A DNA stretch of 64,000 nt. Source: Asterias rubens. Lineage: Eukaryota. Shown here piece by piece: positions 7,457-53,139 of the stretch. The notes under the pieces were generated by a model. The model saw only the letters and a program-made list of their open reading frames with translations. It was not told the DNA's origin and ran no database searches. The position numbers and the translations under genes were made by a program. The stretch lies in assembly GCF_902459465.1 (NCBI RefSeq), contig NC_047075.1, forward strand, positions 4,464,001-4,528,000. Direction: 5' to 3'. Position 1 is the stretch's first letter; every line of letters starts with the position of its first letter.

Positions 7457-8609
7457 CTATCAACTCATTGAACAGGTACAGGGAATAAGATGGAACAACT
7501 GGAGTGGGGATTATTACAAATTGCATCATGAAAACACGGCAAGTTTTTTCGAATTCAAACTCTTACCAAGGCCATGGTTTATGGGACATGAAGTGATTGA
7601 CTTGTTGAACTGGAAAGGTTATTTTCTTCGCTGTAACTAAGAACATGAAGAATGCCTGAGACTCTCCATTTGAGCACAGAGATCAAGAACACATCAACGG
7701 TAGGCCCTTTTAACCTTGTTAACGCTATCAATGTTTTAAAAAAGGAAGAAAAGAAAGGTAAACAAAAACTACAACAAAAACAATTTCCAATAAATTCTAG
7801 TAAAAAGATCAACTAAAAATTCAATTTTAATGAGAAGGCTCAAATTTCTTTGACAAAGGGACTGCCGACTGTTTGTTGGTGGACATTACGAAAACATTCA
7901 CAACATTCACAGCGGTAAAGTTGATTTCCATTCAGTATACAAACATCGGAAATATGAAATCAGATATTAGATACCGACTGTTTGACTATTGCAGTGAGAT
8001 GAAAAATTATTGTTTTATTGTAGAATATTCTTTACTAGAATTTGTCATTTGACATTTTATGAAAGTAACATTTACAATCTCATTTCGTCCAGCATTGTTT
8101 AACCAAACGATTGATGGCGATAACCAGCTAAGTTTGTTGGTAAAGAAATAATTTCAAAGATCAGCCAAATTGTTTACTGAAATAATCAAGGTGTGTTTTT
8201 AAATGTACAGAGCAGAAGTTAAAATTGTGACCTGGAAATTCAAAACTTTTTTTTGTCGGAAGGAAATAGAATCGCACAACTAGGCCTATTACAAAATGTT
8301 TAACAGAGTGTTTAAGAAAAGATTTTTTGAAATGGTATTTTCTCTTTTTATTCTATTGTGATTATAGCTGCACACATGCTGTTGGATAGTAGAATTACAT
8401 GGCACGTGAACTGATTATATTGATATAATAAGTGATCCAAGTCATTTGTATTTGTAGGACTTAGAATTTAACTAGTGACATTTTCAAACTTGCCAAATAT
8501 TGTGAAATGCTGAGAAGAGATGTAAAAATCAGATTGTCGTACCACAACTTTCCACACTGCTTCGTGTGGGGGAAGAGTCCAGAGATTTGACCATGGATCA
8601 AGAACCTCA

Positions 8610-8653
8610 GTCTCCTGACGATGACTAGAGCAAGCTAGTCGAAACATTGAGAC
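8610..8653 (+). ncRNA. Minimal type I hammerhead ribozyme motif in a Penelope-like repeat
   Basis: gtctc-CTGACGA-t-gactag(agcaag)ctagtc-GAAAC-att-gagac: core boxes, 6-bp stem II, 5-bp stem I. Stem III carries a mismatch. Confidence 0.6.
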
Positions 8654-11201: not shown

Positions 11202-11797
11202 TAGGCCTGGGCGAATTATTCAAATATCCGGTTAATGGCGAATAGGTTTTCCTATCCGTAACCGCGAATGCCTTTTTTTTCTTAACCGGATATCCGCATA
11301 GGGCGCAAATAGCTGTTTATAAACCGGATAGTTCTGTAATTACGACCAAGTAACCGGATATTCTTAAATATAATTACCGAATATCCGCGGACGTCGGGCG
11401 ACAACTGATAGGAATGTTTTGTCTGAATCCTTATGAAACTTGTATTAAGACAGCATAAACAGCATAAATTAAGTATTTAACTATGCTCACCTCCGTGAAG
11501 AGTTAAAACAATGAAATTTCTGACGCAATTTGTTCAAAGATTACGAAAGTTTTCCTTCACGTAGAGTCAATCACGATCAAAAGAAAAAGCATCCGGTTAT
11601 TTTTATGAATGAACCGAGTGACACTGTCTAAATTTAATCAATCCGCCCATAAGATCTCATTCACAGCGCCATCTAGCGGAATATGTATCTTTAAAGCGCC
11701 CTATAGCGGCGAAAAAAACTATTCGAATATTCGGTTAATTTCGGATAGTTGGCCAGCGGTATCCGAATAACAATATTTCACTATTCGCCCAGCACTA
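11202..11797. mobile_element. Non-autonomous hAT-type MITE
   Basis: TIRs taggcctgggcgaat / attcgcccagcacta; perfect 8-bp TSD aaaaccat. Confidence 0.85.
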
Positions 11798-11957
11798 AAA
11801 ACCATGTAACAAAAAAACAAACAAAAATAAAAACAAGTAAAAAATAAAGCAATTTAGTGATAATATTGACTGTTTAGCAAAGAATGAATCTTTAGTACTT
11901 CGTGAAATCAAGCCCTTGTTAATTTATAAAAGACAATGAGGACTTAGTTCAACTCAC

Positions 11958-12984
11958 CACATCATAGCTCTCTGCGACTAAATGACTGCAGTTCTGGAAC
12001 AGATAGCTTTCCAGCACCTCATAGAACTTGTATTCACACCTCTGATGCACACAAGAGGTATTGCAGTTCACAACTGCCTCCTCAATACATCTGCTCTCAT
12101 TGCCTCCTGTCAAGTTAGCCTCACACCTCATGAGGTTCTCATACAAGCAGGAGGTACAGTTGGACAGCTGCTGCGAGGTGCAATTAGCAGTTGTTACATT
12201 GTAGAGGGTGATGGTCAGATGGTGGCAGGAGATTGCTGTGTCGTTCCAAACACCCGCGGAGGTGTTCTGGCAAACGTCTGAGCCGTTGACAGCGCACAGG
12301 ACTCGCCACTCCTCCATGCATTCCTCAGCCTCGAGCTCCAAACAGGTCTCATATGAGGCATTGTGGTGGACGAATATGTACCCGTAGTCCACACATATTC
12401 CCCTGGCTTGTTTGGCACACGTCTCATTAAACTGATTGACACAGCTTCCTGCGTAGGCGTCAACGCAGCAAGCTTGTGCTTCTTCGGAGATCATGGAATC
12501 ATGTTGATAGAAACTCTCTCTGGCTGTCTTCAAGCATGCCTCCTCAACGGTACCTCTGCAGTTTACCTCAGCAAGCTGCAAGCAGACCCCATCGTGCACA
12601 TTGGTGCAGTTTGCCTTGCTGTCATTCATGCAATGTGAGTCCTCTATATCGCCACACGCAACCTCAGCTTCCTCCTGGCAGAGCTGGGCGAAACTTCCGC
12701 GGCATTCAGTCAACGTCTCATTCCGGCAGATCCTTCCCGAGTCTAGCAGGCAGGATTGGTGTAGCACCTGATCCATGCAGATGTCGACCACTGTGTAATT
12801 GTTCCATGCGAGTCTGGTCTTGTTGCAGTCAAAGAAGACCGTTTGATAGTACGGCTCCAGGACGGTGTGATTGGAGGGTGTGTACAGAGAATGAGCGGTG
12901 TCGGCATAGCGACGGAATGTGGTGTGGTTTCCACAGTGACAGTCGGAGCCATTCTTTGTGGCCGAAATGTAAAAGTTGTCCTCC
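11958..12984 (-). CDS. Giant gene exon: second half of WSC domain plus Cys-x7 periodic region
   Basis: Acceptor catcacag, phase 2. EDNFYISATKNGSDCHCGN completes the WSC pattern begun in exon 14865-14630. Ends at a consensus GTGAGT donor. Confidence 0.85.
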
Positions 12985-15900
12985 CTGTGATGAAACAGTA
13001 AAGGAGTGGTACACAAACATGCAATAATTAACGGTAGGGTCATGGATTGGTTTTTGTTTACGTAATGCTGATTTACAGGCAAAACTATAAAAACAAATAA
13101 ATAAAAGTCTCTACTTGCTGAGAAAAACAACAACAAAATTTCATGGTGTTTTCACACGAATAGTCACCAAGGTCAAAATTCCAATTGAGCCTAGTTAAAC
13201 TGGGTTTAACTGGAACTAGTTGAAAACAAGTTCATAAACTATTTAAACACAGCTAAAACCAGTTGGTTTAATATGGCAAATGGACAGAAACCAACTGGTT
13301 TATAATTTAAACCTAGTTGAGCAGTTAAACCTAGTCCAAACCAGTTGGTTAATTTGGAAAATGGACGAGTTTGGTCACAATCCAAGTGACCCAATTTGAC
13401 TGGGTTCAACTGAAATTTTGACCTGGGAAAATTGATCCAAGTTCAAGTACCAATTGTACATGTACCGTATCTCTAGCCTCAGCATTCACGAAGAGACGCA
13501 AACCTCGTGTACATGTATCTCATAAATTTGAGAAAAGATTCATGCATGAATGGTTTCTCAAACTTAAATGGTTTGGGGTGAAGTATCATCCAAATCATAT
13601 GACTTCGGAAAGAATCCTTTCTTAAAGGGAAGGTACACGTTTGGTAATTGTCAAAGACCAGTCTTCTCACTTGGTGTATCCCATCATTAGCATAAAATAA
13701 CAAGCCTGTGAAAATTTGGGCTCAATTGGTCATCGAAGTTGCGAGAAAATGATGAAAGAAAAAACACCCTTGTTGGACGAATTTGTGTGCTTTCAGATAA
13801 GCTAGAAGTCTTTTATTATTTTAGTGAGAAATTACCTCTTTCTCAAAAACTATGTTAATTCAGAGGGAGTCATTTCCCACAATGTTTTATGTTAACAGCT
13901 CTCCAATGCTCGTTACCAAGTCAGTTTTTAAGTTAATATTTGTTTTGAGTAATTATCAAACGTGTACCTTCCCTTTAAAATAGTTTAAATTATCACAATC
14001 TGCAGCGCTACTTACCAAGTAAGATTTCATGGTCACTAATTTGTTTTAGTACCTAGAAAAGTATGACCCTGCCTTTAATGATTGGACAACATGGTCCCAT
14101 CCTCTACCTTTCAGTCAATTTAAATGGGTCTCATAATTCAAACATATTTGCCAGAAAAATATTGAGCGTTTTGAGCTGCATATCAGGCGTAGATAAAGCA
14201 GAAAATAAAAAAAATCATTACATATAATAACTTGTGTCCTTAAAGCCATTGGACCCTTTCGGTACAAAAAAAAAAAAAAATAAAAATCACAGATTTACAA
14301 ACAACTTACATGTACAGGGTTTACAGAAGGTAATGGTGAAAGACTTCTCTTGAAATATTATTTCATGAAATGCTTTACTTTTTGAGAAAACAGTAAAACA
14401 ATATCAATTCTCGATATCGAGAATTACAGACTACTTTTAAACACATGGGACCAACGGCTTTACGTCCCATCTGAAGGACGAAGCAATGGTTAAGTGTCTT
14501 GCTTAAGGACACAAGTGTCACAGCTTTTTAGAAAGACTAGAAGTTGTAGAGTTATAGTTGTTGTTGTAGAGAGTTTGAGAAATAAAATAGTCTGATTTAT
14601 AACTGTGGTTGGTTTGACAAAGATCGTACCTGCATAGCTTCTGACACAACTCCCTTGTCATGACTTTAGAGAAGTTGAGGTTCTCAGGGTGGTCTGTCGT
14701 GACTTTGGCAACATCGAAAAAATGGTCCAGATCATGGAAGCAGCCGATAAGGATGGCCTTCTCGTAGTTGGTGCCGTTGACCGTGATGCAGCTAGGATTA
14801 GTTGGATAAGGCTGCTGCTCTCCTTTCATGGTCTTGAAGCAACGCTGAATGGTGGAATTTAATTCCTGTTGCAAGATAAACAATATGTACTTACTTACGG
14901 TTGTATGGATGTATTAAGAGGATCGTTCAGAGTGATTTCTTAAAGGCAGTGGACACTATTGGTAATTACTCAAAATAATTATTGGCATATTTTGTAAATC
15001 CTTACTTGGAAACGAGTAATGGGGAGAGGTTGATGGCATAAAACATTGTGAGAAACAGCTCCCTCTCAAGTGACCTTGTGTTGGAGAAAGAAATAATTTT
15101 CCACGAATTTGGTTTCGAGACCTCACGTTTAGAACTTGAGGTCTCAAAATCAAGCATCTGAAAGCACACAACTTCGTGTGACAAGGGTGTTTTTTCTTTC
15201 ATAGTTATCTCGCAACTCTGACGACCGATCGAGCTCAAATTTTCACAGGTTTGTTATTTTATGCATATGTTGAGAACACCAAGTGAGAAGACTGCTCTTT
15301 GACAATTACCAATAGTGTACACTGTCTTTAATTGGTTTCAACCTATCGACTAGCTTGCTCTATTCATTGTCATGAGACTGCGTAGACTCTTGATTAGTCT
15401 TGGACTGTTCATCCCCTTACGGGTGAATGTAGACTTAGGCTTCTGCCTTTATTAAAGACACCGGGGTCGATTTCACAAAGAGTTAAGACTAGTCTTATCT
15501 CTAGTTAGGACATGTTACTCGTCCTAACTTAGGACTAGCTGTACATTTTTCATATCTCCTAAGACTTGTCCTAAGTTAGGACTAGTCCTAACTCTTTGTG
15601 AAATCCACCCCTGGACACCTCTGGTAATTGACAAAGACCAATCTTCTCACTTGGTGTATCTCAACATACGCATAAAATAACAAACCTGTGAAAACGTGAA
15701 CTTAACTGGTCGTCGAAGTTGTGAGAGAATAATGAAGAAAAAACCCACCCTTGTTGCACAAGTTGTTTGCTTTCGGATGCCTTCAATTCGAGACCTCAGC
15801 TGAGGTCGCAAATTCAATTCAAATATTGAGTGAGAAATTACTTCTTTCTCAAAAACTGTACTTCAGAGGGAGCCGCTTCTCACAATGTTTTATACTACAT

Positions 15901-18900
15901 GTATCAACAGCTCTCCGTTGCTCGTTACCAAGTAAGTTTTTACGCTAAGAATTATTTTGGTGTCCAGTGCCTTTAAGACCCCATGTCTATCTTGATCACA
16001 CCCCAGCATATGTATGTATGTATGTGAGTCGACCCTGTATGTATGTATTAAGAGGATCGTTCAGAGTGATGTCTTAATTAGTCTCAACATATCGACTAGC
16101 TTGCTCTATCCATCGTCAAGAGACTGCGTAGACTCTTCAATAGTCTTGGACTGTTCATCCCCCTTTGCCGCAGCTTTGTAACAATAGACCGATCCAGTAG
16201 GCTCCGCCCACGTTGCACTTGTGAGCGAGAACACGTGGGGCTCTCCAATGCCTTCCTGCACAACTCGTGCTGCACGCGCGCCAAGATACGCGCACGCATG
16301 TCGGACCTTCGTTGCGTTGTGATTGGTCAATACGCAATGGGGCGGAGCTTAATGGATCGGTCTGATGAGTTGCTCATTTGAAGTCACTTATTATGAAAAC
16401 ACCTAGGTCCTAACCGAATGTAACGTGGTATGAGAGAGTGGACAGTTGAAAGCACCCTGAGTTACCTTGGAAGTTGCAAAACGAGTTCCTGAGGCAAAGC
16501 CGGAGGATCTAGTTAGTAGCTAACTGTAAGATTTAAATGGATATTATGGGTGCGTTTGATTAGCTTCCCTGTGTCGACCCCGCGGTGCTCATTCGGGTGA
16601 GCCCCTGACAAGAGCTAACCAAACGGTCACACTCGTCCTTTTGTGGTGCTCATGCACCTCGGGCCAGCCCCAAGTGACCCGTTCCACAAGCAGGGCACTG
16701 GGGGTTGACCCGGGTGAGCCCCTGAAATGATGTCAAAGCTATTTGAAAAGACTGAGGGCAGACCCGGGTCGACCCTAGGAAGCTAATTGAACGCACCCTA
16801 TAGGTGCACACTTACCCTCTGCTTGGTAATTGTGTTCGGATGACTGTAGATATCTGGCAACTCGGCAAAGAAGAACTTGTTGCCTTGGATATCCGTCGTC
16901 AAGGACTCATTAGATAACTTCTCCGTCGGGAAGCTGATTCGGCTACCCATCTTGACAATCCGAACGGACTCAAATTGGAATCCATTCCCTTCATTAAAAT
17001 ATACAGGCAGTTTTTTTATTTATTTATTTTCTAATTCAAAAGTTTAATGTTCTGGTTGTCGTACAACGATTTTCGTCAAGATATATTTGGTAAATTTTTA
17101 TGATTCAAAGGTGCTTTCATATTAAAGGAACACGTTGCCTTGGATCGGTCGAGTTGGTCTTTGAAAAGCGTTCTGTAACCGTTTGTTATAAAGTGCATAT
17201 GGGTAGAAAGATGTTGTAAAAGTAGAATACAATGGCCTATACAAATATGCCTCGAAATTGTGTGTTTTCTTTTTACCTCGTCGACTAACATGGTCGGCCA
17301 TTTACGGGAGTCAAATTTTTTACTCCCATAAATGGCCGACCGTGTTAGTTCGCGACGTAAAAAGGAAAACCGTGCAATTTTTAGTGATACTTGTGTGGAT
17401 CATTGTATTCTACTTTTAAAACATCTTTCTAACCATATGCATTTCATAACAAACGGATAAAAATGCTTTTTATAGACCAACTCATCCGATCCAAGGAAAT
17501 GTGTTCCTTTAACATTTTAACACTGTTTCCCAATACTTCACATAATAAATAAGAACCCATGAAATTTTGTAGATATTTGTGTCAGTTAACTCACAAGTAG
17601 TGACACCCTAAACCACGTTCACGCCTCATGCAGAACCCTTGATAATATGGATTTATGATCGACAGCATAATGCGCCACAGCACCTTGTAAACCATGACAT
17701 TATGCTATAAACGAATAGGTCTCATACATTTCAAAAACGTAGTTCCACATATATGTACCATGTACACATGCAGGGAAAAAATACTAAAAGCACTTACATT
17801 TTAGGGGTTTGATTAAAAGCTGTGTAAGAACTTATTATTATTAACTCTCTCTGTATCCATATTGAACATGGTATGTACATGTAGATGTCTTGCCATGACT
17901 TTAACAGTGTCATTCATAGCCAGCAGATTAGTCATATTACATCTGATCTTAGGAAAGACAACTTCCATTCTGAACGTGACCTCTGGCTCCTCTCTGAGGT
18001 TGACAGTCACCTCGTGGGTGATTCATCACATAACGATCACGATTGCTTTGGACTGTTGATGCGCACAAAAAAGTGCAGACAAATTGTCACTTGATACGAA
18101 CGTTTTAAAATTACATGCTGATGCAGAACCCTATGATCTCTGCAATATGGAATTATGATCGACAGCACAATGCGCCACAGCACCTTGTAAACCATGACAT
18201 GGTGCTATAAAGGAATAAGTTTAATATTTCAAAAACAAAGCTCCACATACATGTACATGTACCATGTACACATGCAGGGGTGTGGTTAAGAGCTGTATAG
18301 AACTTATTATTAGTCCACCCTCTGTTACATATCCAACATGGTATATGCAGATGTCAGTCTTGTTGACTCGAGTCGGTGACTTGGACTCGGGTCAGACTCG
18401 AGTCACCAATTTTGTTGACTTGCGACTTGACGTGACTTGGACAAAAATTACTTGTGACTTGACTTGATTTGAACAAAAATGACTTGTGACTTGACTTGAC
18501 TTGACTTGCGCAAAAATGACTTGAGAGTTGAGAAGTGACTTGAATATTGAACAAATGTGATTTAATTAAATTATCAGTCGTAATTATTGTTTAACATAAT
18601 CAAGTCTTCGGCGACAATGCCGCTGGCCGCTGCTATCTCATGTTTACCACAATGCGCGCCTATGGACGTATGTAACACGCGCATGCATACAGTATCTGTG
18701 TACATGTACTAGTTTGCGCATAGAAAAACATGTATTCTTCCATACAATCAGTTTAGGAAAGCTATGTAGGCGTGTATCGTTACGCTTGTGCAATAGTAGC
18801 TATACAGACGGCTGGAAAAGAGGCTGTACAATCTTGCAATATTTACATACATTTTCTCAAATTCTAATGAAAAATAAATACTATTGACTTAAATAGGCCA

Positions 18901-21900
18901 ATATGTAGCACATATTATATTTAGTAAGGTCAATTGTCCTTTGCAAAGCGTTTTCGTCCTGAAATATTTTACTGTAAAAATAATGTACACTTCATTATTT
19001 AAATTCTCCCTACATCACCATGCTCCCAGCATGCATTGTGCCATGGAGATGGGAACTTACGCCGTCTATTCGTGTGTACACACGGCGGACGTCGGGCATT
19101 CAGCTCAGCCGTACATTGCATGCAAGTTCATTTCAGCGGTATTCTGCAGCTGAAAGAATGTCGTCTTCTAAATAAAAGGTCAGAGTGAATGAGCTCTGAT
19201 GATTTACGGATTGAATTTATTGACTGGTCTCTTAACAGGTTTTTTTCCTTAAACTTAAGTTTGTCACAACATCATGGGAGTGAGCTTATTTCCGGACATT
19301 ATATGACTTGTGACTTGACTTGACTTGCAAAAATTTGACTTGTGACTTGACTTGACTTGAGCAAAAATGACTTGTGACTTGACTTGACTTGAGCAAAAAT
19401 TACTTGTGACTTGACTTGACTTGAGCAAAGATGACTTGCGACTTGACTTGACTTGAGAAAAAATGACTTGGTTACAACACTGGCAGATGTCTTGCCAGGG
19501 GGTCTTTTTCTAGGGAGTGAAACAACAAATATTTTCTCAAAATAAGATGTTTACAAAATACCATTTTTAGCAGTGCATCATTCAAAGCCACAAACCTTCA
19601 GGAAGTGCCAGCAGAACCGTCATATTACAGCTGATCTTAGGAACGACAACTTCCATTCTGAACGTGACCTCTCGCTCCTTTCTGAGGTTGACAGTCACCT
19701 CATGGGTCACTTCGGACGAGGAGTACACCTCAAAGTCAATGGCACTGGAGCCTCCCGTCGGAGGCAGCATGAGGAAGCGGGAGCTGGGGGCAGGTGCTGT
19801 GAGGTTGAAGGTGATGTTCTTGGGCATACGGTAGAGGCGAGACCCCGGGTTTAAACCGACGGGAACGTTGTAGGGCTTGGCTGAGTTATACCACATGGAG
19901 ACCTGTAGGAACAAAGCAGGCCAATTCATCATGCAAGCAACAGTGTTTTAACCAAGTAAGTTTTTATTTCCTGGAGTGTTTACAAAAGGTGTAAACATGG
20001 TAACAGACAGTGCCGGCATTATTTCAAACAAATTTTCTGAATTTTCCAACAGCATAAAAATAAAAAAAGTAGGAAGAATGAAATGTCTGTTGAATACCCG
20101 AGTCTTCCATGACATCCCAGCATACACCTCAACCTCAGGGTGGATAGGATGAGGTACTACAAACCTCTCACACATCTGAGCCTGATTAAACTTCAGGATG
20201 TAAATCTATATAGGTACCGTTTTTTTCATTAGCATTCACCCCTAAACTTAAGTACTTAAGTCTGGACTTAAGTACACAAATGACCCATACCCTTGAAATA
20301 CCCGAGTCTTCCATGACATCCCGGCATACACCTCAACCTCAGGGTGGATACGATGAGGTACCACAAACCTCTAACACATCTCAGCCTTATTAAACTTCAG
20401 GATGTAAATCTATATAGGTACCGCTTGTTTCATTTGCATTCATCCCCAAACACCCAGTGAATGTCTGGACTTAAATACAAAAATGACCCAAACCTTTTAA
20501 ATACCTGAGTCTTCCATGACATCCCGGCATACACCTCAACCTCAGGGTGGATACGATGAGGTACCACAAACCTCTCACACATCTGAGCCTGATTAAACCT
20601 CAAGATGTAAACCTCGTACTCATGGAAGTTAAGCTGCTGCAGGGAGGGCATGTTCTCCAGATCATGGACAAACGCTGGAGGAGGGTGACTGAAGAAGTGG
20701 GAGTCTTGAATTATATCTGAGGGTAGGTCTGAGTGGACCATGATGAAGAGGTCGAAGGCATTGCCTGGTGGATACATATTCATTATAGAGTTACATTCTA
20801 TTCAAGGTAGGATCGTTATAAAAATATTACAAGTTACCACACAACCATGAATTGAATTAGGAAAAATACAGCACTTCTATGTCACTTCAACAAGGCCAAA
20901 GGCCAAGTTGGATAATAATAATAATAATAATAATAACCGTATTTATAACGCGCCTTTTGCCAAAGGATACAGAGCACCAGGTATTATTACTGAAAGGAGT
21001 GGGACGAAGTTTGAGATATAAGACCTAATCCTTAATCACCATGTGATGGTTTACAAGGTGCTGTGGCGCAATATGCTGCCAATCCTGCCAGGAACACCGG
21101 GGCGAACCCCTTCTCTTTGCCATTAAAGTGCACTGGGTTCTTTTACATGCGTTTACACAACACATGGGACCAACGGCTTTACGTCCCATCCGAAGGACGA
21201 AGCAATGATTAAGTGTCTTGCTTAAGGACACAAGTGTCATGGCTGGGGATTCGAACCCACACTCTGCTGATCAGAAACACCAGAGTTTGAACTCGTTGCT
21301 CTTAACCGCTCAGCCATGACACTTCCACTATGGGACTATGTTATACACTGATTCTCCCTCGAGACCAGGCGATTGGAAAAAACTTTCGACAGTGAGTAGG
21401 CTTTCTTTTGTTTGAGTTGTCTAGCAAAGGAACGGTTCGGATCACAGGAAGTGCCTGTGACATAATTTATCCATGCTCCCCTATCATTTTCATTATCATT
21501 ACTATATAACATTGTCATGGCGTATTAATTTTGGTTTTACCCATACACCAATGTGTGTTAGCACTGTATACTCAGTACTTTCCCGAGTCCTGTGAACAAA
21601 TATCACAGGCATGTTACTCGGGTGGGATTCAAACCCACGACCCTTGCAATTCTAGAGCAGTGTCTTACCAACTAGACTACCGAGGTTGCACACCAATGTG
21701 TGTTAGCACTGTATACTCAGTACTTTCCCGAGTCCTGTGAACAAATATCACAGGCATGTTACTCGGGTGGGATTCGAACCCACGACCTTTGCAATTCTAG
21801 AGCAGTGTCTTACCAACTAGATTACCGAGGTTACACACCAATGTGTGTTAGCACTGTATACTCAGTACTTTCCCGAGTCCTGTAAAAAAATATCACAGGC

Positions 21901-42900: not shown

Positions 42901-45900
42901 ATCAGCGCCTCTGTACCCTTCCTGAAAGGAACACAAAAGGGGAACATTTACGCCCATTATTGTATTCACTGCCTGCTTTTTGTTTTTGTTTTGATGTGGT
43001 ATCGTGGCCAAGTGAATAAGGGCACCGAACTCAAGCTCTGGTGTTTCTGTTTAGCTGAGTTTGGGTTTGAGTCCCGATCACGACACTTATTTGTGTCCCT
43101 GAGCAAGACACTTTTGTTTTAATTGCTTCTCTCCACCTAGGGGTAAATGGGTACCTGTGAGGGCAGAAATGGTTCATGTGATTTATTTTAATAGTTTAGT
43201 AGCGCATATTTGTTGCACAGCCTGTATACTCCCCGGGGAGCTGAGATGGTTTAAGGAATGAATTAAATGGCCCAGTGACCAGGTGTAATATTGTTAGAGG
43301 CACTTTAAAACGCCTTTCGGGTGTGTAAAGAGCTATGAAAATCAACTATTAATATTGTTTTAAAGGGTCACAATCACAAAGCTTGGTTATACTGTGACAT
43401 ACCTATAGGACAGCATCACATTACAGATGATCTCTTGATGGGTCAACATGGAGTTATTCCACATCAGGAAGGTCTGGTTCCCCAAGAGATTCACCCCAGG
43501 AGCAAGCATCACCAGGTGAATATGGTATGTCGTCTCCGTTGTGAAGCTCAGGTCCGAGGAGCTATTGGTGGTCATGTTCATATCCGGTTCCAGGAAATCC
43601 ATCTCCAAGGTGCCCGGGATGATCTGAAGATCTGGACAGGAGACGTTCATCCAGATGTCGTTCACGTCAAAGTCCAAAGTGTGAGAGAGGTCAAAGGTGA
43701 AGAGGACAAGGTCGGCAGAATCTGGGGACAGGGTGCGGTCAGATGCAGGTATGAGTGGAACAAACGGTTGGTCTGTGATCATCACTTTGGGAGAGCTGCC
43801 ACTGGAGAAGGCATTCCTGGTGAACTTGTAAACCGCCTTGGCTTTGAGTTCCAGCTGCTGACCAGGAAGGACCTCGGTCAGCACCCGGGAGTAGAACCAC
43901 ATCATGATCATGTCAGCACCAGAATTACGCTGATCCATGACGTTGATGAAGGGTTCAATTTGGAAAACTAGCTCGTCGATGATCCCAGAGCCCTCCTCGG
44001 AAGATGCAAAGTGGGCAACAATACCGGGAAACCTCTTCTCTGTCATCACCTCCTGTGTAGTGTCCATGGTGACAAAATGACCCGCCCCATCGTGAGTCTC
44101 ATTAAACATGGATCCGCTCGTCGTTGCCACCAAGTTCGCCCCAATCGACCACCACGGAGTTACGTTGAGGAAAGCCATGGGAATTATGCCCTCGATGGCG
44201 GGGAAGGAGATCGTAACCTCAATCCCATGATTTATAGCTTCGGGATGTCTGATTATGAGCCTGTAGAAGAACTGCTCATGCTTCAGAGCAAAGTTGACCT
44301 CTGAGAAGGAGGCAGTCGGTTGGAGGTGGAGGCTTGGTCTCCTTACCGTGTAGTCCAAGGAAGCTGCAAGTAAAATGACAGACATGTATGGGTTTGAGGC
44401 ATTGCAAGATGAGGTATCAATGGGCGTAAAGCCGTTGGGACGTAAAGCCGTTGGTCCCATATGTTGTGTAATGCATGTAAAAGAACCCAGTGCACTTATC
44501 GAAAAGAGTAGGGGTTCGCCCCGGTGTTCCTGGTTGTGGCTGCTTAATGCGCCGTAGCACCTTGTAAACCCTTATAAGGTGCTTAATAATTGGGTCTCAG
44601 AATTCATCACTGCAATAAGCTATCTTTCTGAAAGTTTGTATATACTCAGCGCCTTGAGTACCTTGTTTGGTAGATACGTGCGCTATATAAGACTTCGATA
44701 TATATATATATATATATGTCTACATTGTGGCAAGGCTCAAATTTTACAGTGGACCCTATACATATAAGCCTGAGGCCAGTAGTTCTAGTGATGGGGCCTG
44801 TAAACTCATGACTGGACAAGTTCAGCAGTCTTGTGTTTTTCAATGTAATAAAATACAAACATAATATATATTATATTTGTTTTATTACACTTCATACATA
44901 ATTCAGTAGTTTGGAGCAAGGGAAACTTACGACTGTGAAAGTGAACCATGATAAGTAGAATAGCGCCCGTGGATGACGTCGCACAATGTAATGCGCATGA
45001 CAAGTAGAATAGCTCATGGGGAGCTATACTTGTCATGCGCACTTACCACTTGCGTGAATACTCACGTGCGTGCTTTTAGCTAAATTAACACCTGGCATGT
45101 GATGATGAATGGACCAATGAAAACTCGACTCGGTCATGAATATGAATGAGGTATAGTAGCATAAACTATAATACACCTCTAGCTACCGGGTAATCTTGGT
45201 CATCTAGCATGTCTAGTTAGAATGACATTGACCTAGAATTTCAAAGGTTGTGTGTTCGAATCCTACCCGAGTAATATGCCTGTGATATTTTTTTTCACAG
45301 AACTAACACACATCAGTGTATATGGGTAAAACCAAATTGAATAATAATCATAATCAAAATGAGAATACTAGCATTGCCCGCATCGGAAGTGTCGTGGCTG
45401 AGTGGTTAAAAGCACCGAATTAAAACTCTGGTGTTTCTGATCAGCAGGGTGTGGGTTCAAATCCCCAGCCGTGACACTTGTGCCCTTTTAAAAGCAAGCC
45501 ACTTAACCGTTGCTTCGTCCTTCAGATGGGACGTGAAGGCATTGGTCCCATGTGTTGTGTAACGCTTGTAAAAGAACCAAGTGCAGTTGAAAAGAGAAGG
45601 GGTCCGCCCCGGTGTTCCTGGCTGTGGCTGCTAAATGCGCCGTAGCACCTTGTAAACCCTTTCAAGGTGCTACATAATTGGGTCTCAGAATTCATAACTT
45701 TCAATTACCTCTCTTTCTGTATAAATGTATATACTAATGTTAGATACGTGCGCTATTTAAGACTTTGATAATATTATTATTATATTATTAAATCTTTACC
45801 GTTAAGTGATGTTATCTGCTCTTCTACAGGTCGAGTTTGTTGAATGATTGTAGTTGCAAGGACTGGTGAGAAAATCTGATTCACATCTATAAAGTTAGGC

Positions 45901-48900
45901 AGCTCACCTGCAAATAATGAAATAAATACAAGTAGGATTTGAAACTTTGCATGGTGGAAACACGATTAAGAGTTTGCGGTAACACCATGTAATGATAATC
46001 TCTAAATGAGTTGGGGTGGTTCTTAAAGCCATTAGACACTTTCGGTACAGAAAGAAGGAAAAAAAGGTCACAGATTTACAAATAATTTACAGGGTTTACA
46101 GAAGGTAATGGTGAAAGACTTCTCTTGAAATATTATTCCATGAAATGCTTTACTTTTTGAGAAAATATTAAAACAATATCAATTCTCGATAGCAAGAATT
46201 AGGGATTTATTTTAAACACATGTCATGATATGGCGAAACGTGCGGAAACAAGGGGTTTTCCCGTTATTTTCTCCCGACTCTGATGACCGATTGAGCCTAA
46301 ATTTTCACAGGTTTGTTATTAAGTGTGGGCCTTGGACAACCCTGTTTACTGAAAGTGTCCAATGGCTTTAAAAGAAGCGTTGGTTTCAACTTTCGATCAG
46401 TATGCTCTGATCATCTTGAAAAATTAGTGACCATAAAAACATACTTGGCGGCTGTTGATAGTATCAACTATTTTGACAAAAAACTTACACACCTACGATA
46501 ACCACTGTCAGGTTAAAATCTTGCCAGTTTATCGGTTCCGGCGGTGGATAGTAGAAACTAGTAGTGTTGACATTAATGCAATCCTTGGCATGGACGTAGT
46601 CTAAGGTCGTTGGGAGCTCCTTGTAAGGATTGTACGTGGGCTCTGGAGTGGCAGGTACAGGCTTCAGTTTCATAAGCACAGTACGACAGGCTCGATCGAT
46701 GTCCTCACTGATGAATATATCCACCGTGTAAACGGTGCCATTACGATCCTCCTCATAAGCTGGGAGAAATAATAATATAATATATAATATTGAAGTCTTA
46801 TATAGTGCACGTATCTACCAATTAAGGTACTCAAGGTGCTGAGTATTTACAAACTTTCAGAGAGATAGGTTATTGCAGTGATGAATTCTGAGATCCAATT
46901 ATTTAATGGCGCATACAGCAGCCACAGCCAGGACCACCGGGGCTTAAAAATGTTTAAGTGTCTAGCTGTTAAAAGGACACAGGTGTCACGGCTGGGGATT
47001 CGTAACCCACACTCTGCTGATCAGAAACACCAGAGTTTGAATTCGGTGCTCTTTACCGCTCGGCCACGACACTTCCATAACAACACACAGGGTGAGTCAA
47101 AATGAAGCTGACCAAGGTTTATGATTTAAAGACAACACAACAACTGACACTCAAAACCCTAGTGAAGCACATAATAAACAAGCATTCTTTGCTGTTAATC
47201 TGAAAAAAAGGTTGACACAAATTGATCCTTTCGAAGAGAAGTTATGCCTGTTTTACTGACAGCACTCAGGTTTGTAGCTGTCAATGGAATGTTTATAATG
47301 CTTGACAGAATCTAAACATCTGACTTTGTGGGGAAGTGGGTTTAAATCCCGGTCGTGACACTTGTGTCTTTGAGCAAGACACTTAGCCATTGCTTCTCTT
47401 TACCCAGGGGTAAACTGGGTGCCTGTGAGGGCAGAGACGGTTTATGTGAATGGTAAGCTTGGAGCGCGGTAACTCACAGCGCCGGCTGTATACTCTCCAG
47501 GGGGCTGAGATGGTTTAAGGAATGAAATATATGGCCCAGCGACCAGGGGTAATGATGGCAGAAGCGCTTTGATACACCCTTCGGGCTGTGATAAATCGCT
47601 ATATAAAAATTGATTATTATTAATATTAACGACTAGAACTACTCACTCCATATCTCCTCAGTAGACATGTTACAGAACTCCTTGTTGAACGTCGCAAGTA
47701 TCGGGGCTTTCGTCGGTACCGTCCAGTCATACTGAGTGAAAAATAGACCTCTATCATTCACCTGGATGCAGGTTGTGTTGGGCTGGACGGGGCAGAGGAG
47801 CTCATGGGGTTCGTCGGGGAAGGTGGCCATGAGGCGAGAGAGGCACTCATAGGGTTGGACGAAGAAGCATTCAGAGGTTGTGTTGTGTGGGAGACACCGA
47901 GAGATGTTGAAATGGTAGCAGAAGGCAGGATCCCAGTTCTGCTCCTCAGAGGTGTCAAAGAAGACACAGTCTGAAAAGAGAAATAAAACAATTGTTAGCA
48001 TAAAGACTTACTTGGAAATAAGCAATGCAGACCTGTTGATAGTATAAAGCATTAAGAGAAACGGCTCCCTGGACTAGTCCTAAGTTAGGACTAGTCATAA
48101 CTCTTTGTGAAATCGGCCCCAGTTCATTTAAACTTGCATACCTTCATAGCTGGTCTTGTAGCAATTCTGACCAGGTGTCCACCAGCAGTCAGGAAGCCTC
48201 CATGGTTCCGTCAAATTAATCCACAACGGCTCTGAGATGTCAACCTTTATCTGAACCTGGGAAAATAACAACCAAATTCAGCCTGTTATTGGTCGTAGTA
48301 GTACTAGCTAGTAACAGTTACTAGTTATGATAGTAGTAACAGTACTAAGTAAGTTTAGTAATAAGTATTGGTATTTAAAGGCAGTGGACACTATTGGTAA
48401 TTGTCAAAGACTAGCCTTCACAGTTGGTGTATCTCAACATATGCGTAAAATAACAAACCTGTGAAAATTTGAGCTCAATCGGTCATCGAAGTTGCAAGAT
48501 AATAATGAAAGAAAACACACCCTTGTCACACGAATTTGTGTGCGTTTAGATGGTTGACTTCGAGACCTAAAGTTCTAAATCTGAGGTCTCGAAATCATAT
48601 TCATAGAAAATTACTTCTTTCTCGAAAACTATGTCCCTTCAGAGGGAGCCGTTTCTCACAATGTTTTATACCATCAACCTCTCCCCATTACACGTCACCA
48701 AGAAAGGTTTTATGCCAATAAATATTTTGGGTCATTACCAATAGTGTCCACTGCCTTTAACAGTAACTGAGTACTGGCAACCCAATCCAGAACAGACTGG
48801 ACAATGGCCTTAAAACCGACATGATGATGATGAGAAAGTTGGAACGAACCTTTCAGACCAAACCAAAATTCTACCAGCAGACAATTGTAGGGTGTCGTGG

Positions 48901-51900
48901 CCAGGTACCCATTTACCCCTGAGTGGAGAGAAGCAATTATAGGGTGCGTTTGTTTAGCTTCCCTGGGTCGACCCCGGTGTGTGGCGTTTTTTTTTCCCAG
49001 GACAAGTGTGTGCAGATAATTACCCACGTTCGTCCTGGTAAAAAAAACGCCACGCACCGGGGTCGACCAAGGGGAGCTAAACGAACGCACCCATTGTAAA
49101 GTGTCTTGCTCAGGGACACAAGTGCCATGACCAGGATTCGAACCCACACTCTGCTGAACAGAAACCACGAGCTTGAGTTTGGTAATCTTGTCCGCTCGGC
49201 CACGACACCCCATTAGAAAGCAATAATGGTTCTTTACCGTGCTTTGGTCTTGAATCCAGTTGACAAACATTGGGTTTATTCTAGTCTCATTCATCTCAAA
49301 GGAGTAGCTGGAGAGACTGATGTTGACTGAGCTCTCATCGAAGGCCAAATACGGGAAATCAACCTGAGAATCACAATTAGAAAAGTTAGTACCACTATCA
49401 TAAAAATACAGACATTTTGTTTCCATTGGCTCATAAAAATAATAATAGTGGCTTCTTTTATAGTGCTTTCCTGTCACTCAGTGACTACAGTATTTCCTGC
49501 AAGGTACACAAAAGTACTTGTTATACCTGGGTAACAAATATTGTTAACCGGTGTACATTAGTTTGATCGTTTCCAGCGTTGGTCGGTTTCTAGTGCTCAG
49601 TACGAAAAGGCAGTGGATTCAAGGGAACAGTGAAGAGTTGTTTCTTACTTGAGCAACTGTTCGTCTGCTTATTAAACTATGCATACTCGCCGAAAAATAA
49701 TATTCGAAGATGACAACAGAACTTTGAGATAGGAATAATCATATTACCAAGGTATACTAAAACAATTGTTGCACGCTGTGATAGGTGTCCGTGGGTTTTA
49801 TACACACTCGGGGAAAATTGGCACCCTCGGGCATGACGAGTGTACAATACGCCATGGACCCCATCACAGCGCGCAACAATTGAATAATGTAAGTGGGACC
49901 TTGTTCCTTTATAGCACCTTTGTTTACAGCTCTCCGTTGCTTGTTACCAAGTAAGTTATTATACTAACAAATATTTTGAGTAATTACCAATATGTTTTGT
50001 GCCTTTAAAGCCATTTGACACACTGGGTACAGAAAGAAAATTAAAAGTTCACAGATTTACAAATAACTTGCAGGGTTTACAGAAGGTAATGGTGAAAGAC
50101 TTCCCTTGAAATATTATTCTATGAAATGCTTAACTTTAAAAACAAAAATTTAAACAATATCAATTCATTTTAAACACATGTCATGGCACGGCGCAACGTT
50201 CTGAGACAAGGGTGGGTTTTCCCATTATTTTCTCCCGGCTACGATGACCAATTGAGCCTAAATTTTCACAGGTTTGTTATTTTATATATAAGTTGTGATA
50301 CACGAAGTGTGGGCCTTGGACAACACTGTTTACCGAAAGTGTCCAATGGTTTTAAATATGTCTATGTCCTCATACGATGTACTGTAGAGTAAAAATCAGA
50401 CAGGTACCTTGAATGTTACATTGATGGCTGTGTGCTCTGGTTTTACAGTATGTGTCAGGTGCCAATTGTACATCAACACACTACCTCCATCGATGAGATG
50501 GGGAACAGTGTCACCACTAATCCAGAAATCCACCTGTAATGTCAATCAAATATTATACAAATAATGAATGTTAACGAGTAAAATGGTGTGAATACTTTCG
50601 TGAGTTGAAAGACCGAATGTTCTTTTCAACGAGGCGGAGCTGAGCTGAATGGAACATACCATCTTTTACTGAATGAAAGTATTCCACGAGCCTCGAAGTG
50701 TGACGTCAGCTGTTGAGGCTATGGAAGACTTTGGAACTCTAGGTGGCAGCAGACTTACAAAATTCCATGTTTACGTAATGCTGACCATGCGCATTTTCCC
50801 AGAGAATAGAGGATTTACCCGGTACGTCTGCTGCTCCATAGCGTTCCAAAGTCTCCCAATGAGGTCTATGGTCACTAGGCCTGGGCGACTAGTGTCGAAG
50901 TGGCGACTTTTAAATTCTTAATTAAAGACAGTGGACACTATTGGTAATTGTCAAAGACAAGTCTACAGACAGTTGGTGTACCTCAACATATGCACAAAAT
51001 AACAAACCTGTGAAAATTTGAGCTCAATCGGTCGTCGAAGTTGCGAGATAATAATGAAAGAAAAAACAACCATGTCACACGAAGTTGTGCGCTTTCTGAT
51101 GCTTGATTTTGAGACTTCAAATTCTAAACTTGAGGTCTCGAAATCAAATTCGTGGAAAATTACTTCTTTCTCGAAAACTACGTCACTTCAGAGGGAGCTG
51201 TTTCTCACAATGTTTTATACTATCAACCTCTCCCCATTACTCGTAATCAAGAAAGGTTTTATGATGATAATTATTTTGAGTAATTACCAATAGTGTCCAC
51301 TGCCTTTAAGTCACGACTACCGTTTTTCATCTACTCAGTTAATCATGCCGCCACGAGGACAACTAGAAAAAATAGTCGCGACTACTACAAAAATAGTCTC
51401 AACTACCTAATGGTCAACAAATTGTGTCCCTCACGAAAACACAATCAGACAACAGTTACACAATCCTTCAGTGTGAGTTTTACTTTTTTGCGCCTGCGAC
51501 AAACATTGCCACGATGCATCTTGAGAATTAAAAATCAGTCGCGACTAGTGTCGTAGTCGCTACTATTTGAGGCCCAACTAGTCGAGTAGTAACCGTCACT
51601 AGTCACCTAGGCCTAATTATCAGTGTATTCACCACAGGAATAGGAGCAAGGTCACTGGAGTCATCTGTAGTCTCTTCTGCAGCCATCAAGCGTCTTGAGG
51701 TGAACCGAGGGCCATTATTATCCACCTCATGCTTATCTGTGCAAAATAAGATTCACGTTTAAACGGAACACGTTGCCTTCGATCGGTTGAGTTGGTCTTT
51801 GAAAAGCGTTTGTAATCGTTTGTTGTAAAATGCATGGTCGAAAGATTGCATGGTTTTCCTTTTACCTTGTTGACTAACACGGTCGACCATTTATGGGAGT

Positions 51901-53139
51901 CAAATTTTTGACTCGTCCCATAAATTTTTTACTCCCATAACAAACGGTTACAAACGCTTTTCAAAGACCAACTCGGCCGATCCAAGGCAACGTGTTCTTT
52001 TAATTCCATTCCATACACAATATAAACAATGGAACATATAGATATGACCATGGGCAATCAATAAGTAGATATTGATACAATTCAGCCACCTTAAGGCTGT
52101 GAAGTTTTTATTTTTGGAATAAACCAAATAATAGGCCTACACCAATCAATAAATTAAACATTATCTTCCTCAAACCGGAGTGTGATAATAAGCCATAGTA
52201 GTAAGTACCTACTAATACTCTCAGTTTGTATACTGCACTCTGCGTATTGTGAGTGTCAGTGCAAGAATTACATTCTAAACATTATCTTCCTCAAACCGGA
52301 GTGTGATAATAAGCCATAGTAGTAAGTACCTACTAATACTCTCAGTTTGTATACTGCACTCTGCGTATTGTGAGTGTCAGTGCAAGAATTACATTCTAAA
52401 CATTATCTTCCTCAAACCGGAGTGTGATAATAAGCCATAGTAGTAAGTACCTACTAATACTCTCAGTTTGTATACTGCACTCTGCGTATTGTGAGTGTCA
52501 GTGCAAGAATTACATTCTAAACATTATCTTCCTCAAACCGGAGTGTGATAATAAGCCATAGTAGTAAGTACCTACTAATACTCTCAGTTTGTATACTGCA
52601 CTCTGCGTATTGTGAGTGTCAGTGCAAGAATTACATTCTAAACATTATCTTCCTCAAACCGGAGTGTGATAATAAGCCATAGTAGTAAGTACCTACTAAT
52701 ACTCTCAGTTTGTATACTGCACTCTGCGTATTGTGAGTGTCAGTGCAAGAATTACATTCTAAACATTGTGCGTGTACGAGGTTCCTCATGAAATAACGCT
52801 CTGTAATTTTAAACTTTCAGGTTTACTTAATGAGGCTGGAAGATAAATTCGTTATCACACGCACGCTCGTGAAATACGTTAAAATACAGCGCATTTGCAA
52901 CCCATATCCAACTCAGCCTTCAGCCTCGTTGGATATGGAACGCAGAAGCGCTTTATTTTAACGTATTCCACCCGCGCTTGTGTGATAACTTACTATGTAC
53001 ACACATACGTGTTTGACCATATAACTGGGCTAAGGGAAGGGTGTGAAAGAAACCTACCTGTCCTGATAAGAAAGTCTCCCAGAGTGAGACAGAGGAACAG
53101 ACCAAAGAATGCCAGAGCTGTCCGTTTCCAAAGACTCAT
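11958..53139 (-). CDS. Giant multi-exon secreted glycoprotein (at least 3153 aa): repeated beta-rich modules, Cys-rich inserts, EGF-like unit, WSC domain; probably 3'-incomplete
   Basis: Coding exons read by hand, each AG/GT bounded (one GC donor), each phase matching the next: 53139-53058 (signal peptide MSLWKRTALAFFGLFLCLTLG; alternative ATG 53166), 51736-51633, 50533-50408, 49363-49238, 48256-48142, 47970-47647, 46759-46493, 45886-45800, 44363-43403, 41994-41808, 40758-40629, 39403-39317, 38473-38273, 36260-35985, 34844-33486, 31235-30972, 30425-28194, 26707-26484, 25481-25330, 22336-22218, 20797-20505, 19902-19596, 16988-16816, 14865-14630, 12984-11958. Total 9459 nt with no internal stop. 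Confidence 0.8.
13622..13978. mobile_element. TTAA-target MITE family D, representative copy
   Basis: ttaa-agggaaggtacacgttt ... aaacgtgtaccttccct-ttaa. Related copy at about 41100-41466. Confidence 0.8.
14630..14865 (-). CDS. Giant gene exon: first half of WSC domain
   Basis: IGCFHD...MTRELCQKLC matches the WSC pattern GC(F/Y)xD...MTxxxCxxxC; AG/GT boundaries. Confidence 0.8.
16548..16798. mobile_element. MITE with gggtgcg TIRs and 3-bp TSD (PIF/Harbinger-like)
   Basis: tat-gggtgcgtttgattagcttcc ... ggaagctaattgaacgcaccc-tat. A related copy at about 48941-49091 sits inside a SINE. Confidence 0.7.
17122..17512. mobile_element. TTAA-target MITE family C, representative copy
   Basis: ttaa-aggaacacgttgccttggatcgg ... 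ccgatccaaggaaatgtgttcct-ttaa. Related copies at about 587-976 and 51760-52003. Confidence 0.8.
18355..19482. mobile_element. Non-autonomous hAT-type element with subterminal GACTT arrays
   Basis: Imperfect TIRs cagtcttgtt / acaacactg; perfect 8-bp TSD gcagatgt. An empty paralogous site is at about 17880 (gtagatgtcttgcc). Confidence 0.88.
20060..20620. repeat. Three-copy duplication (about 203-bp period) of an exon 3' end + donor
   Basis: gagtcttccatgacatccc...aaacctctcacacatctgagcctgattaaac at about 20100, 20304 and 20507. Confidence 0.9.
21519..22200 (-). repeat. Head-to-tail array (about 145-bp unit x4) of a tRNA-like-containing repeat
   Basis: Units repeat at about 21545, 21690, 21835 and 22012; minus strand carries ggtagtctagttggtaagacactgctctagaattgcaagggtcgtgggttcgaatccc. 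A second array lies at about 23260-23870. Confidence 0.75.
24760..25326. repeat. 42-bp minisatellite, about 13.5 copies
   Basis: Unit aaacaacgcatgagacccaaactggatcaacagtgctcacag; degenerate copies extend to about 24330. Confidence 0.95.
28194..30425 (-). CDS. Giant gene largest exon (2232 nt): CxC-rich insert plus repeat modules
   Basis: Core of the 814-aa ORF. Acceptor ccaacag at 30426; inferred GC donor at 28193. Contains DQVIFDFQISHTEESDAPAFNV and SIGDYVRMKATLWIPE. Confidence 0.88.
33486..34844 (-). CDS. Giant gene exon (1359 nt) with a 26-aa x5 N-glycosylation-rich repeat
   Basis: Core of the 463-aa ORF. Acceptor ttttaacag, donor GTGAGT, phase 1-1. Confidence 0.88.
34890..35300 (+). mobile_element. 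tRNA-derived SINE, representative near-full copy
   Basis: A-box gtcgcggccgagcggtt, B-box gggttcggatccc, body gtgtccttaagcaagacacttaacc and (att)n tail. Related copies at about 20925-21325(-), 45385-45790(+), 40110-40470(-), 47330-47625(+), 53510-53830(-) and 59990-60200(-). Confidence 0.8.
36600..38400. repeat. Tandem array (150-185-bp period, 10 copies) of an exon 3' end + donor + CAGACAAA microsatellite
   Basis: gacttaccagggtcacc...gttagagtac recurs at about 36742, 36927, 37111, 37280, 37433, 37618, 37776, 37927, 38112 and 38267. Confidence 0.95.
39463..39822. mobile_element. hAT-type MITE
   Basis: TIRs taagcttggg / cccaagctta; 8-bp TSD atttgtag / acttgtag (one mismatch); CGATAT-rich interior. 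Confidence 0.75.
41960..42960. repeat. 84-85-bp minisatellite, about 12 copies, spanning an intron acceptor and exon start
   Basis: Unit ttcctgaaaggaacacaaaaggggaacatttacgcccattatttctttgcc(c/a)(g)ctagatagggtaggatcagcgcctctgtaccc. Confidence 0.95.
43403..44363 (-). CDS. Giant gene exon (961 nt), repeat modules
   Basis: Core of the 357-aa ORF. Acceptor cttgcag, donor GTATGT, phase 1-2. Confidence 0.85.
46022..46370. mobile_element. TTAA-target MITE family B, representative copy
   Basis: ttaa-agccattagacactttcggta ... gaaagtgtccaatggct-ttaa. Related copies at about 22815-23208, 31636-31998, 33137-33428 and 50005-50355. Confidence 0.75.
52156..52767. repeat. 121-bp tandem repeat, five identical copies
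   Basis: Unit starts at 52156, 52277, 52398, 52519 and 52640; no differences seen between copies. Confidence 0.95.

Follow-up and report, generated by a model that had tools for sequence, protein, structure and literature searches.

Introduction

Tandem CnaA-like domains form the stiff stalk of prokaryotic fibrillar adhesins, and a 2025 survey of isopeptide domains renamed DUF11 as CLIPPER (10.1101/2025.04.25.650565). According to that survey, the Lys-Asn isopeptide with its catalytic Asp is absent from some DUF11 members, and eukaryotic occurrences are probably contamination, since related eukaryotes have no homologues (10.1101/2025.04.25.650565). Here we analysed a stretch of 64,000 nucleotides (nt) from the starfish Asterias rubens (assembly GCF_902459465.1, contig NC_047075.1, positions 4,464,001 to 4,528,000), hereafter the window. 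We show the exon structure, transcription and conservation of a minus-strand gene for a giant protein made of two alternating module types, A and B, and the homology of its A modules to a prokaryotic stalk domain. We consider it probable that this is one transcribed gene for a secreted glycoprotein of at least 3151 amino acids (aa), whose alternating adhesin-stalk-like beta-sandwich modules form an extracellular rod or scaffold.

The closest described systems are fibrillar adhesin stalks in which CLIPPER/DUF11 alternates with TIGR04226, here represented by two metagenomic proteins, P0005 and P0006. The starfish protein is likewise long and secreted, and built from tandem two-domain units of ~320 aa in the same order. 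A motif at the start of module A is common to both (V-x-V-x-EP-x-L-x-I ... D-x-h-x-Y-x-h-x-I-S-H-T-x-x-S-x-A-x-A-F-N). In contrast to the prokaryotic stalks, the starfish gene has 24 introns, curated domain models are silent on it and the isopeptide Lys is replaced, and its product adds Cys-rich segments, mucin-like repeats, an EGF-like unit, a WSC domain and 119 sequons. Pilus shaft proteins (BcpA, RrgB, SpaD, EbpB) and antigen I/II C-domains are the best structural matches of a model of module B4, with Z-scores of 10-12.6 and root-mean-square deviations (rmsd) of 2.4-3.8 Å over 130-145 residues, at 8-19% sequence identity. Unlike Gram-positive pilus shaft proteins, the starfish protein has neither a sortase/LPXTG signal nor the Lys-Asn-Asp/Glu triad, and it is one polypeptide of about ten modules, whereas a pilus shaft consists of polymerised subunits.

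Among A. rubens proteins, the footprint proteins Sfp1-15 are also large secreted multi-domain glycoproteins, some with lectin-type domains and Thr-rich repeats (PMC9382459). Compared by domain description only, the published Sfp domain sets (vWD, EGF, FAMeT, FA58C, galactose-binding and others) do not include the architecture reported here, and the paper makes no mention of WSC (PMC9382459).

A 25-exon gene with orthologues in crinoids and a hemichordate

The largest minus-strand open frames at the locus have 820, 492, 400 and 394 codons. We compared the 820-codon frame with 1.84 billion representative proteins using phmmer and recovered only four real homologues, with full-length ones from the crinoid Antedon mediterranea (3801 aa) and the hemichordate Ptychodera flava (2433 aa). 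The tblastn matches of these two orthologues were collinear along the minus strand between 50.5 and 14.6 kb. Exons were anchored by tblastn of orthologues, including sensitive searches for gaps, and their borders were then set by splice-site scoring. This independent rebuild gave 25 exons on the minus strand from 53139 to 11958 (Table 1), together 9453 nt coding for 3151 aa with zero internal stops. The exon number, start and end that had been proposed in an initial annotation of the window from its letters alone were thereby reproduced. Its giant length also stood, although the proposed size of at least 3153 aa became 3151 aa in the rebuilt model, and all seven module motifs that it quoted were found in place, two of them (LDFGMVENLADNKLDSAGDNLILEF and TPGVIVNEADNIADEQDFIHLLLTF) crossing the predicted exon 12/13 and 17/18 junctions. 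Junctions are GT-AG throughout, except that the intron after exon 17 begins with GC (CAG/GCACGT; 28192-28193), a donor supported by peptide continuity in all orthologues and by the NCBI model. The start codon lies at 53139, and NCBI uses an upstream ATG at 53166, nine codons earlier. Alternative acceptors for exon 3 (50484) and exon 25 (13110) were discarded after orthologue comparison.

Orthologues are present in the starfish Acanthaster planci (LOC110989417, 5175 aa), the crinoids Antedon and Anneissia (4133 aa in the latter) and the hemichordate Ptychodera. They are collinear over the 3151 aa, with 59-64% identity for Acanthaster and 40-47% for the others, and the module regions of five orthologues share 40-68% identity with hardly any gaps. 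The Acanthaster protein and its crinoid and hemichordate counterparts have the same module order, Cys-rich segments and WSC as the Asterias protein. Every family member is labelled 'uncharacterized', consistent with the absence of a named gene in the initial annotation, and no paper was found under the locus and accession names. Further eleutherozoan homologues were not found by a search whose word filter is lossy and missed the known orthologue P0004.

To assess transcription, we aligned four sequencing runs to positions 45750-51740. Spliced complementary DNA (cDNA) contigs, X4 record 9 (4060 nt) and X5 record 13 (4084 nt), join exons 2-7 at the predicted borders, with contiguous record coordinates, 0-2 mismatches and empty introns. 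Offsets of 2-3 nt in these contigs are bases common to the donor and the next exon, and run X8 behaves like genomic DNA. From the length of the contigs we would expect them to extend as far as exon 15, in which a 78-bp repeat begins. Contamination is ruled out by the introns, the spliced RNA and the orthologues. The contamination argument of the CLIPPER survey is likewise countered for this family, because the gene has introns, is transcribed and has been conserved in starfish, in crinoids and in a hemichordate.

The 3' end of exon 25 can be read in two ways: a GTGAGT donor at 11958 lies two codons ahead of a stop at 11949-11951, and the NCBI model takes the stop. The Acanthaster orthologue runs on in frame for ~2100 residues beyond this point. 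This extension contains one more A module, the sixth, together with a CX3C-rich region, a furin site and a conserved domain at the C-terminus. Queries made from the C-terminal parts of the Acanthaster and Antedon proteins found no exons downstream of 11958 in window positions 1-11957. The C-terminus of the Acanthaster protein found no counterpart among A. rubens proteins, and its sole match was P0011, from Ptychodera.

Type A modules are homologous to the RrgB-D2 half of a prokaryotic stalk repeat

Beyond the ambulacrarians, the next phmmer matches were P0005 and P0006 only (E 5e-4 and 7e-4), both prokaryotic giant surface proteins from metagenomes. P0006 carries DUF4347, SdrD_B and bMG10 in addition to ten or more DUF11 matches, and the contig that encodes P0005 is compact and prokaryote-type, with genes on the same strand. 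The region that aligns to module A4 recurs in both proteins every ~300-317 residues. One P0006 unit (~317 aa) consists of a match to TIGR04226 (RrgB_K2N_iso_D2, E 2.9e-15) followed by DUF11, and its TIGR04226-matching part is the part aligned to A4 by both phmmer and hhalign. As a separate observation, the gene adjoining that of P0005 (L001 6649-9807, same strand, >1053 aa) is possibly a second adhesin of that kind.

When orthologue profiles were aligned with a prokaryotic A profile by hhalign, A4 scored 97.2% (E 4e-11), A3 94.6%, A5 39%, A1 9% and A2 6%, all in one register, and the B modules were not matched by the A profile. A hidden Markov model (HMM) built from prokaryotic sequences only detected A4 (4e-13), A3 (2e-6), A5 (1.5e-4) and A1 (7.5e-3) in the window protein, and the same set plus the sixth A in the orthologues; the control gave three matches in 120 shuffled sequences. 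The proposed five-fold alternation of A and B was therefore recovered by this profile for A4, A3, A5 and A1, at the expected places, and not for A2. Comparisons between the modules themselves were weak. The best hhalign pair was A3-A4 (75%, E 2e-5), the sole pair at that level, and the eight best pairs were all A-A or B-B, except for A3-B2, whose match is an overlap of segment borders. Paralogous modules were not linked by jackhmmer at strict thresholds within six ambulacrarian proteins, nor by an all-against-all blastp among the minus-strand open frames, which returned intronic repeats only. Taken as profile comparisons, these results show type A to be homologous to the RrgB-D2-type (TIGR04226) half of the prokaryotic adhesin stalk repeat.

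We next examined the residues that form the isopeptide in prokaryotic domains. The Lys of the prokaryotic first strand (EP-x-L-x-I-x-K) corresponds to an invariant Phe in A4 and to Tyr, Pro and Ile in A3, A2 and A1, respectively. At the Asn position, A4 retains Asn or Asp. In the alignment of orthologues, no A or B module has a conserved first-strand Lys. Lys makes up 2.3% of the protein, and P0005 is also without the isopeptide Lys. As judged from these alignments, the starfish modules are isopeptide-free versions of the domain.

Type B modules and a predicted CnaA-like fold

The AlphaFold2 (AF2) models were all-beta, in line with the paired beta-rich modules first proposed, including the model of unit 4 computed from seven sequences. 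Residues 155-338 of the latter, corresponding to B4, superposed on BcpA with a VIA-align Z-score of 12.6 and an rmsd of 2.4 Å, and also on the CnaA-type domains of EbpB, PrgB, SspB, SpaD and RrgB. Against the CLIPPER crystal structure 9ifr the Z-score was 9.6 and the rmsd 2.7 Å, with 122/123 residues aligned. DUF11 and pilin families also led structure searches of the AFDB clusters and the ESM Atlas, and in language-model features the clusters nearest to units 4 and 2 were DUF11/DUF7507. At the sequence level, B2, B3 and B5 align weakly (hhalign 6-11%), in one register, to the prokaryotic DUF11 half. The DUF11 model (PF01345) gave no match at E up to 1 on the window exons, P0003, P0004 or the P0010 units (P0010 being the NCBI protein of this locus), whereas P0005 and P0006 do match, and a profile search of PDB sequences returned nothing significant (best Cna, E 0.38). 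On the basis of one moderate-confidence model, B4 is predicted to have a CnaA-like beta-sandwich fold, and the DUF11/CLIPPER (CnaA-like) half of the prokaryotic unit is the most likely counterpart of type B. The likeness to DUF11 and fimbrial D2-type repeats that had been suggested in the initial annotation is borne out by the TIGR04226-then-DUF11 unit, with hhalign scores of 95-97% for A3 and A4 and the superposition of B4.

Alternative explanations for the modules and the gene

Several results weigh against reading the modules as stalk domains in a single gene. No significant Pfam or NCBIfam model of the beta-module families matches the starfish or orthologue sequences themselves: Pfam gave no useful match on eight large open frames and the full orthologues, and TIGR04226 none on P0010:2090-2435 or P0010:655-980 at E up to 1. 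The match to prokaryotes spans ~50 columns of module A (46-52), and an alignment over ~150 residues is obtained with P0005 only. The B-type sequence links are statistically weak, and B modules do not stand out from shuffled controls in a search with an HMM of the prokaryotic DUF11 half. For A2 and B1, position and pattern are the sole basis of assignment. The unit-4 model has a mean predicted local distance difference test (pLDDT) score of 59 with its A4 half poorly modelled, and the unit-2 model is unusable (pLDDT 41). Since Foldseek and VIA-align also match the leg domains of integrin alphaV and alphaIIb (Z about 9.8), a generic E-set sandwich is possible for B as well. The modules might then be ordinary metazoan E-set or Ig-like sandwiches, for example relatives of the integrin-alpha legs, that have diverged beyond recognition in a lineage-specific matrix glycoprotein, and their prokaryotic DUF11/pilin D2 likeness would reflect a shared fold and a short convergent motif. 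The integrin matches, the silence of the curated DUF11 and TIGR04226 models on the animal sequences and the shortness of the significant prokaryote alignment all agree with this. However, the sole non-ambulacrarian matches in the 1.84e9 sequences are prokaryotic DUF11/TIGR04226 proteins and include no metazoan Ig family, and the prokaryote-only repeat profile detects A modules in register, four to five in each orthologue. Pilin CnaA-type domains outscore the integrin legs (Z 10-12.6), and both the A-then-B order and the ~320-aa unit length agree with the prokaryotic unit. We therefore regard an ordinary metazoan sandwich as unlikely and favour kinship with the adhesin stalk.

The count of genes also has to be weighed, as NCBI annotates the locus as two adjacent 'uncharacterized' models of 2528 aa and 662 aa. 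The first (LOC117299582, P0010) is 100% identical to our model over exons 7, 15, 17 and 19, and differs by its upstream start, one extra 31-aa copy from an intronic tandem array and readthrough of the exon 20 donor, after which it stops (...VDYTGRCQGTKT). The 662-aa product equals rebuilt exons 21-25 exactly, counted from an internal Met. If RefSeq were right, a 2528-aa protein would end after exon 20 and a separate 662-aa WSC protein would start from exon 21; read support covers exons 2-7 and not the exon 20-21 junction that merges the two models. We nevertheless consider two genes very improbable. The split bisects module A5, the first model ends through readthrough of a consensus donor (..VDYTG/RCQGTKT and stop), the second begins at an internal Met without a signal peptide, and the junction peptide is unbroken in single models of Acanthaster, Antedon, Anneissia and Ptychodera (proteins P0003, P0004, P0008 and P0009, the last from Acanthaster). 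Because the NCBI split cuts module A5 while the same peptide is continuous in four orthologues, we read the locus as one gene, a reading that amends the split model of the A. rubens reference annotation. Collinearity with single gene models in four other ambulacrarians and the spliced RNA contigs bear out the one giant secreted protein of the initial annotation.

Signal peptide, Cys-rich segments and WSC

The predicted signal peptide (aa 1-21) is the sole hydrophobic segment of the protein in a 19-mer scan. With 119 Cys, 119 N-x-S/T sequons and this signal peptide, the protein is predicted to be heavily N-glycosylated and secreted, with no membrane anchor. An RRLM motif behind the signal peptide had been considered a possible pro-cleavage site. 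This idea is unsupported because the protein contains no R-x-K/R-R site, and the motif is not conserved among orthologues.

Three Cys-rich segments have cysteine patterns that are conserved across phyla in the orthologue alignment, and segment 1 has no look-alike in the ESM Atlas (best score 0.67). Module-like sequence on both sides suggests that the Cys-rich segments sit inside modules. Exon 15 adds five Thr/Pro/Asn-rich mucin-like repeats of 26 aa (78-bp tandem repeat, 33659-34046). The EGF-like unit proposed earlier has a 9-Cys pattern in all orthologues, but its EGF-family Pfam match is sub-threshold only: cEGF gave E 0.0075-0.0083 (~16.5 bits against a cut-off of 26.6) in two orthologues and nothing in P0010:2430-2500.

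The WSC domain (PF01822) was confirmed in the collinear orthologue regions of P0009 (Acanthaster), P0008 and P0003, with 36.6, 39.2 and 31.5 bits, respectively, against a cut-off of 27.8. The NCBI 662-aa product has a precomputed weak WSC match, and the two WSC exon pieces of the window, scanned separately with Pfam, gave none. In the asteroid orthologue the contiguous match covers profile positions 2-60 of 82 only. A WSC-like C-terminal motif (C..C.GD....CGG) can be seen by eye ~300 Cys-rich residues later in the extra region of Acanthaster, where Pfam is negative. In exon 25, at ~12535-12750 (aa 2885-2957), we counted nine Cys with eight C-x7-C spacings, in contrast to the CX3C-X6-CX3C spacing of the Acanthaster and Antedon tails.

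Proposed role and origin

The core of the protein would be about ten beta-sandwich modules of two alternating types. Such an array could form a long, protease-resistant, glycan-shielded extracellular rod or scaffold on which WSC and Cys-rich units are displayed to glycans or other components of the matrix, possibly in an external coat (cuticle, mucus or adhesive secretion). The disulfide-rich segments may take over the stabilising role of the missing isopeptide clamp, and the WSC domain, which is of a carbohydrate-binding type, and the Cys-rich knots are candidate binding parts. The rod-like scaffold is the likeliest role; we infer both it and any ligand, the rod by analogy with the prokaryotic stalks.

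The domain kinds are already known, and the gene was already annotated, as uncharacterized. What is new is that an animal family rich in introns shows a kinship, detectable by sequence, to the stalk units of prokaryotic adhesins, that this family is conserved from starfish through to hemichordates and that it has no isopeptide residues. One tentative scenario, which we hold to be possible and short of probable, is that the stem lineage of Ambulacraria gained the two-domain A-B stalk unit horizontally from a bacterial or archaeal fibrillar adhesin, and that the unit later multiplied, took up introns, lost its isopeptide bonds and gained disulfide-rich segments. If so, this would be the first bona fide animal family of CLIPPER/pilin-D2 (CnaA-like) domains. 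With this family, ancient transfer from prokaryotes to animals can be tested on a concrete case. It also provides a naturally isopeptide-free form of the fold, to which disulfides and glycans apparently lend reinforcement, and a candidate structural component of echinoderm external coats.

Exon coordinates and neighbouring sequence

Table 1 Exons of the rebuilt A. rubens gene, in window coordinates (i-E, independent E-value).
Feature	Coordinates	Strand	Content and evidence
Exon 1	53058..53139	-	Start codon and signal peptide MSLWKRTALAFFGLFLCLTLG; matches P0010 residues 1-38; donor CAG/GTAGGT
Exon 2	51633..51736	-	Acidic linker with RRLM motif; cDNA contigs X4 record 9, X5 record 13
Exon 3	50408..50533	-	Module A1 start (GSVLMYNWHLTHT); cDNA contigs; orthologue tblastn; prokaryote-only A profile at aa 75-109
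Exon 4	49238..49363	-	Module A1 continued; cDNA contigs, junction scoring
Exon 5	48142..48256	-	End of A1 N-part and start of conserved Cys-rich segment 1; cDNA contigs; mean identity to four orthologues 68%
Exon 6	47647..47970	-	Cys-rich segment 1; cDNA contigs; Cys pattern conserved in alignment
Exon 7	46493..46759	-	Cys-rich segment 1 end and presumed A1 C-part; cDNA contigs
Exon 8	45800..45907	-	Presumed A1 C-part; sensitive tblastn with P0003; P0010 residues 391-428
Exon 9	43403..44363	-	Modules B1 and A2 (DLVLFTFDLSHT); tblastn E 1e-61; 99.7% identical to P0010
Exon 10	41808..41994	-	Module B2 start; preceded by 12-copy 85-bp array repeating its acceptor
Exon 11	40629..40758	-	Module B2; sensitive tblastn with P0004; P0010 residues 806-852
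Exon 12	39317..39403	-	Module B2 (FGMVENLADN...); tblastn, junction scoring, P0010
Exon 13	38273..38473	-	B2 end and first strand of A3; tblastn, junction scoring
Exon 14	35985..36260	-	Module A3 (GDVFQYSLYLTHT); prokaryotic A profile i-E 1.9e-6; hhalign 94.6%
Exon 15	33486..34844	-	A3 end, B3 N-part, Cys-rich segment 2, mucin-like repeats; 100% identical to P0010 residues 1071-1523
Exon 16	30972..31235	-	Segment 2 end and B3 middle part; tblastn, junction scoring, P0010
Exon 17	28194..30425	-	B3 middle part, Cys-rich segment 3, module A4 (DQVIFDFQISHT), B4 N-part; GC donor; 100% identical to P0010 residues 1612-2356; prokaryotic A profile i-E 4e-13
Exon 18	26484..26707	-	B4 C-part (PGVIVNEADNIADEQDFIHLLLTF...); within model region 155-338 matching CnaA-like pilin domains
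Exon 19	25330..25481	-	EGF-like 9-Cys unit; conserved in all orthologues
Exon 20	22218..22336	-	EGF-like unit end and module A5 start (GDILNYGLTVTHH); prokaryotic A profile i-E 1.5e-4
Exon 21	20505..20764	-	Remainder of A5; NCBI second model (662 aa) begins at internal Met here
Exon 22	19596..19902	-	Module B5; tblastn, junction scoring, P0010
Exon 23	16816..16988	-	Module B5; tblastn including sensitive search
Exon 24	14630..14865	-	WSC domain N-terminal part; collinear Acanthaster region matches Pfam WSC, as do crinoid orthologues
Exon 25	11958..12984	-	WSC continuation (..DNFYISATKNGSDCHCGN) and Cys-rich region; 44% identity to P0009 residues 2682-3058

Exon ends are duplicated into introns at four places in the gene. 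At 36748-38273 on the minus strand, the last 93 nt of exon 13 and its donor occur in ten tandem copies (nine beyond the exon) with a period of 153-185 bp, separated by a (AACAGTCAGACAAACA)n tract. Each copy has an open 31-aa frame (KDLVQEATVHVWEPEMILMYNLTNETLAGDP, 0-3 changes) and an internal AG as a potential acceptor, and the donor is GTAAGT in nine copies and GTTAGT in one. One extra copy is taken into the NCBI model, and cassette exons or alternative donors are possible readings of the copies. An 85-bp unit with the exon 10 acceptor and first codons occurs about 12 times at 41956-42961 (95-97% identity by Tandem Repeats Finder), a 204-bp unit that takes in the 3' end of exon 21 occurs 2.6 times at 20093-20611, and a degenerate copy of the exon 22 3' end is found in the following intron (17852-18016). 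Intron 1 contains a 121-bp unit repeated 5.1 times at 100% identity (52155-52767).

Downstream of exon 25, on the opposite (plus) strand, are three tandem single-exon genes at 1671-2672, 4123-5097 and 6482-7456. Each encodes 324-333 aa with a signal peptide, and by eye the products resemble PAN/apple-like and fibrinogen-related domains. These genes would be nested within the giant gene if it extends past the window.

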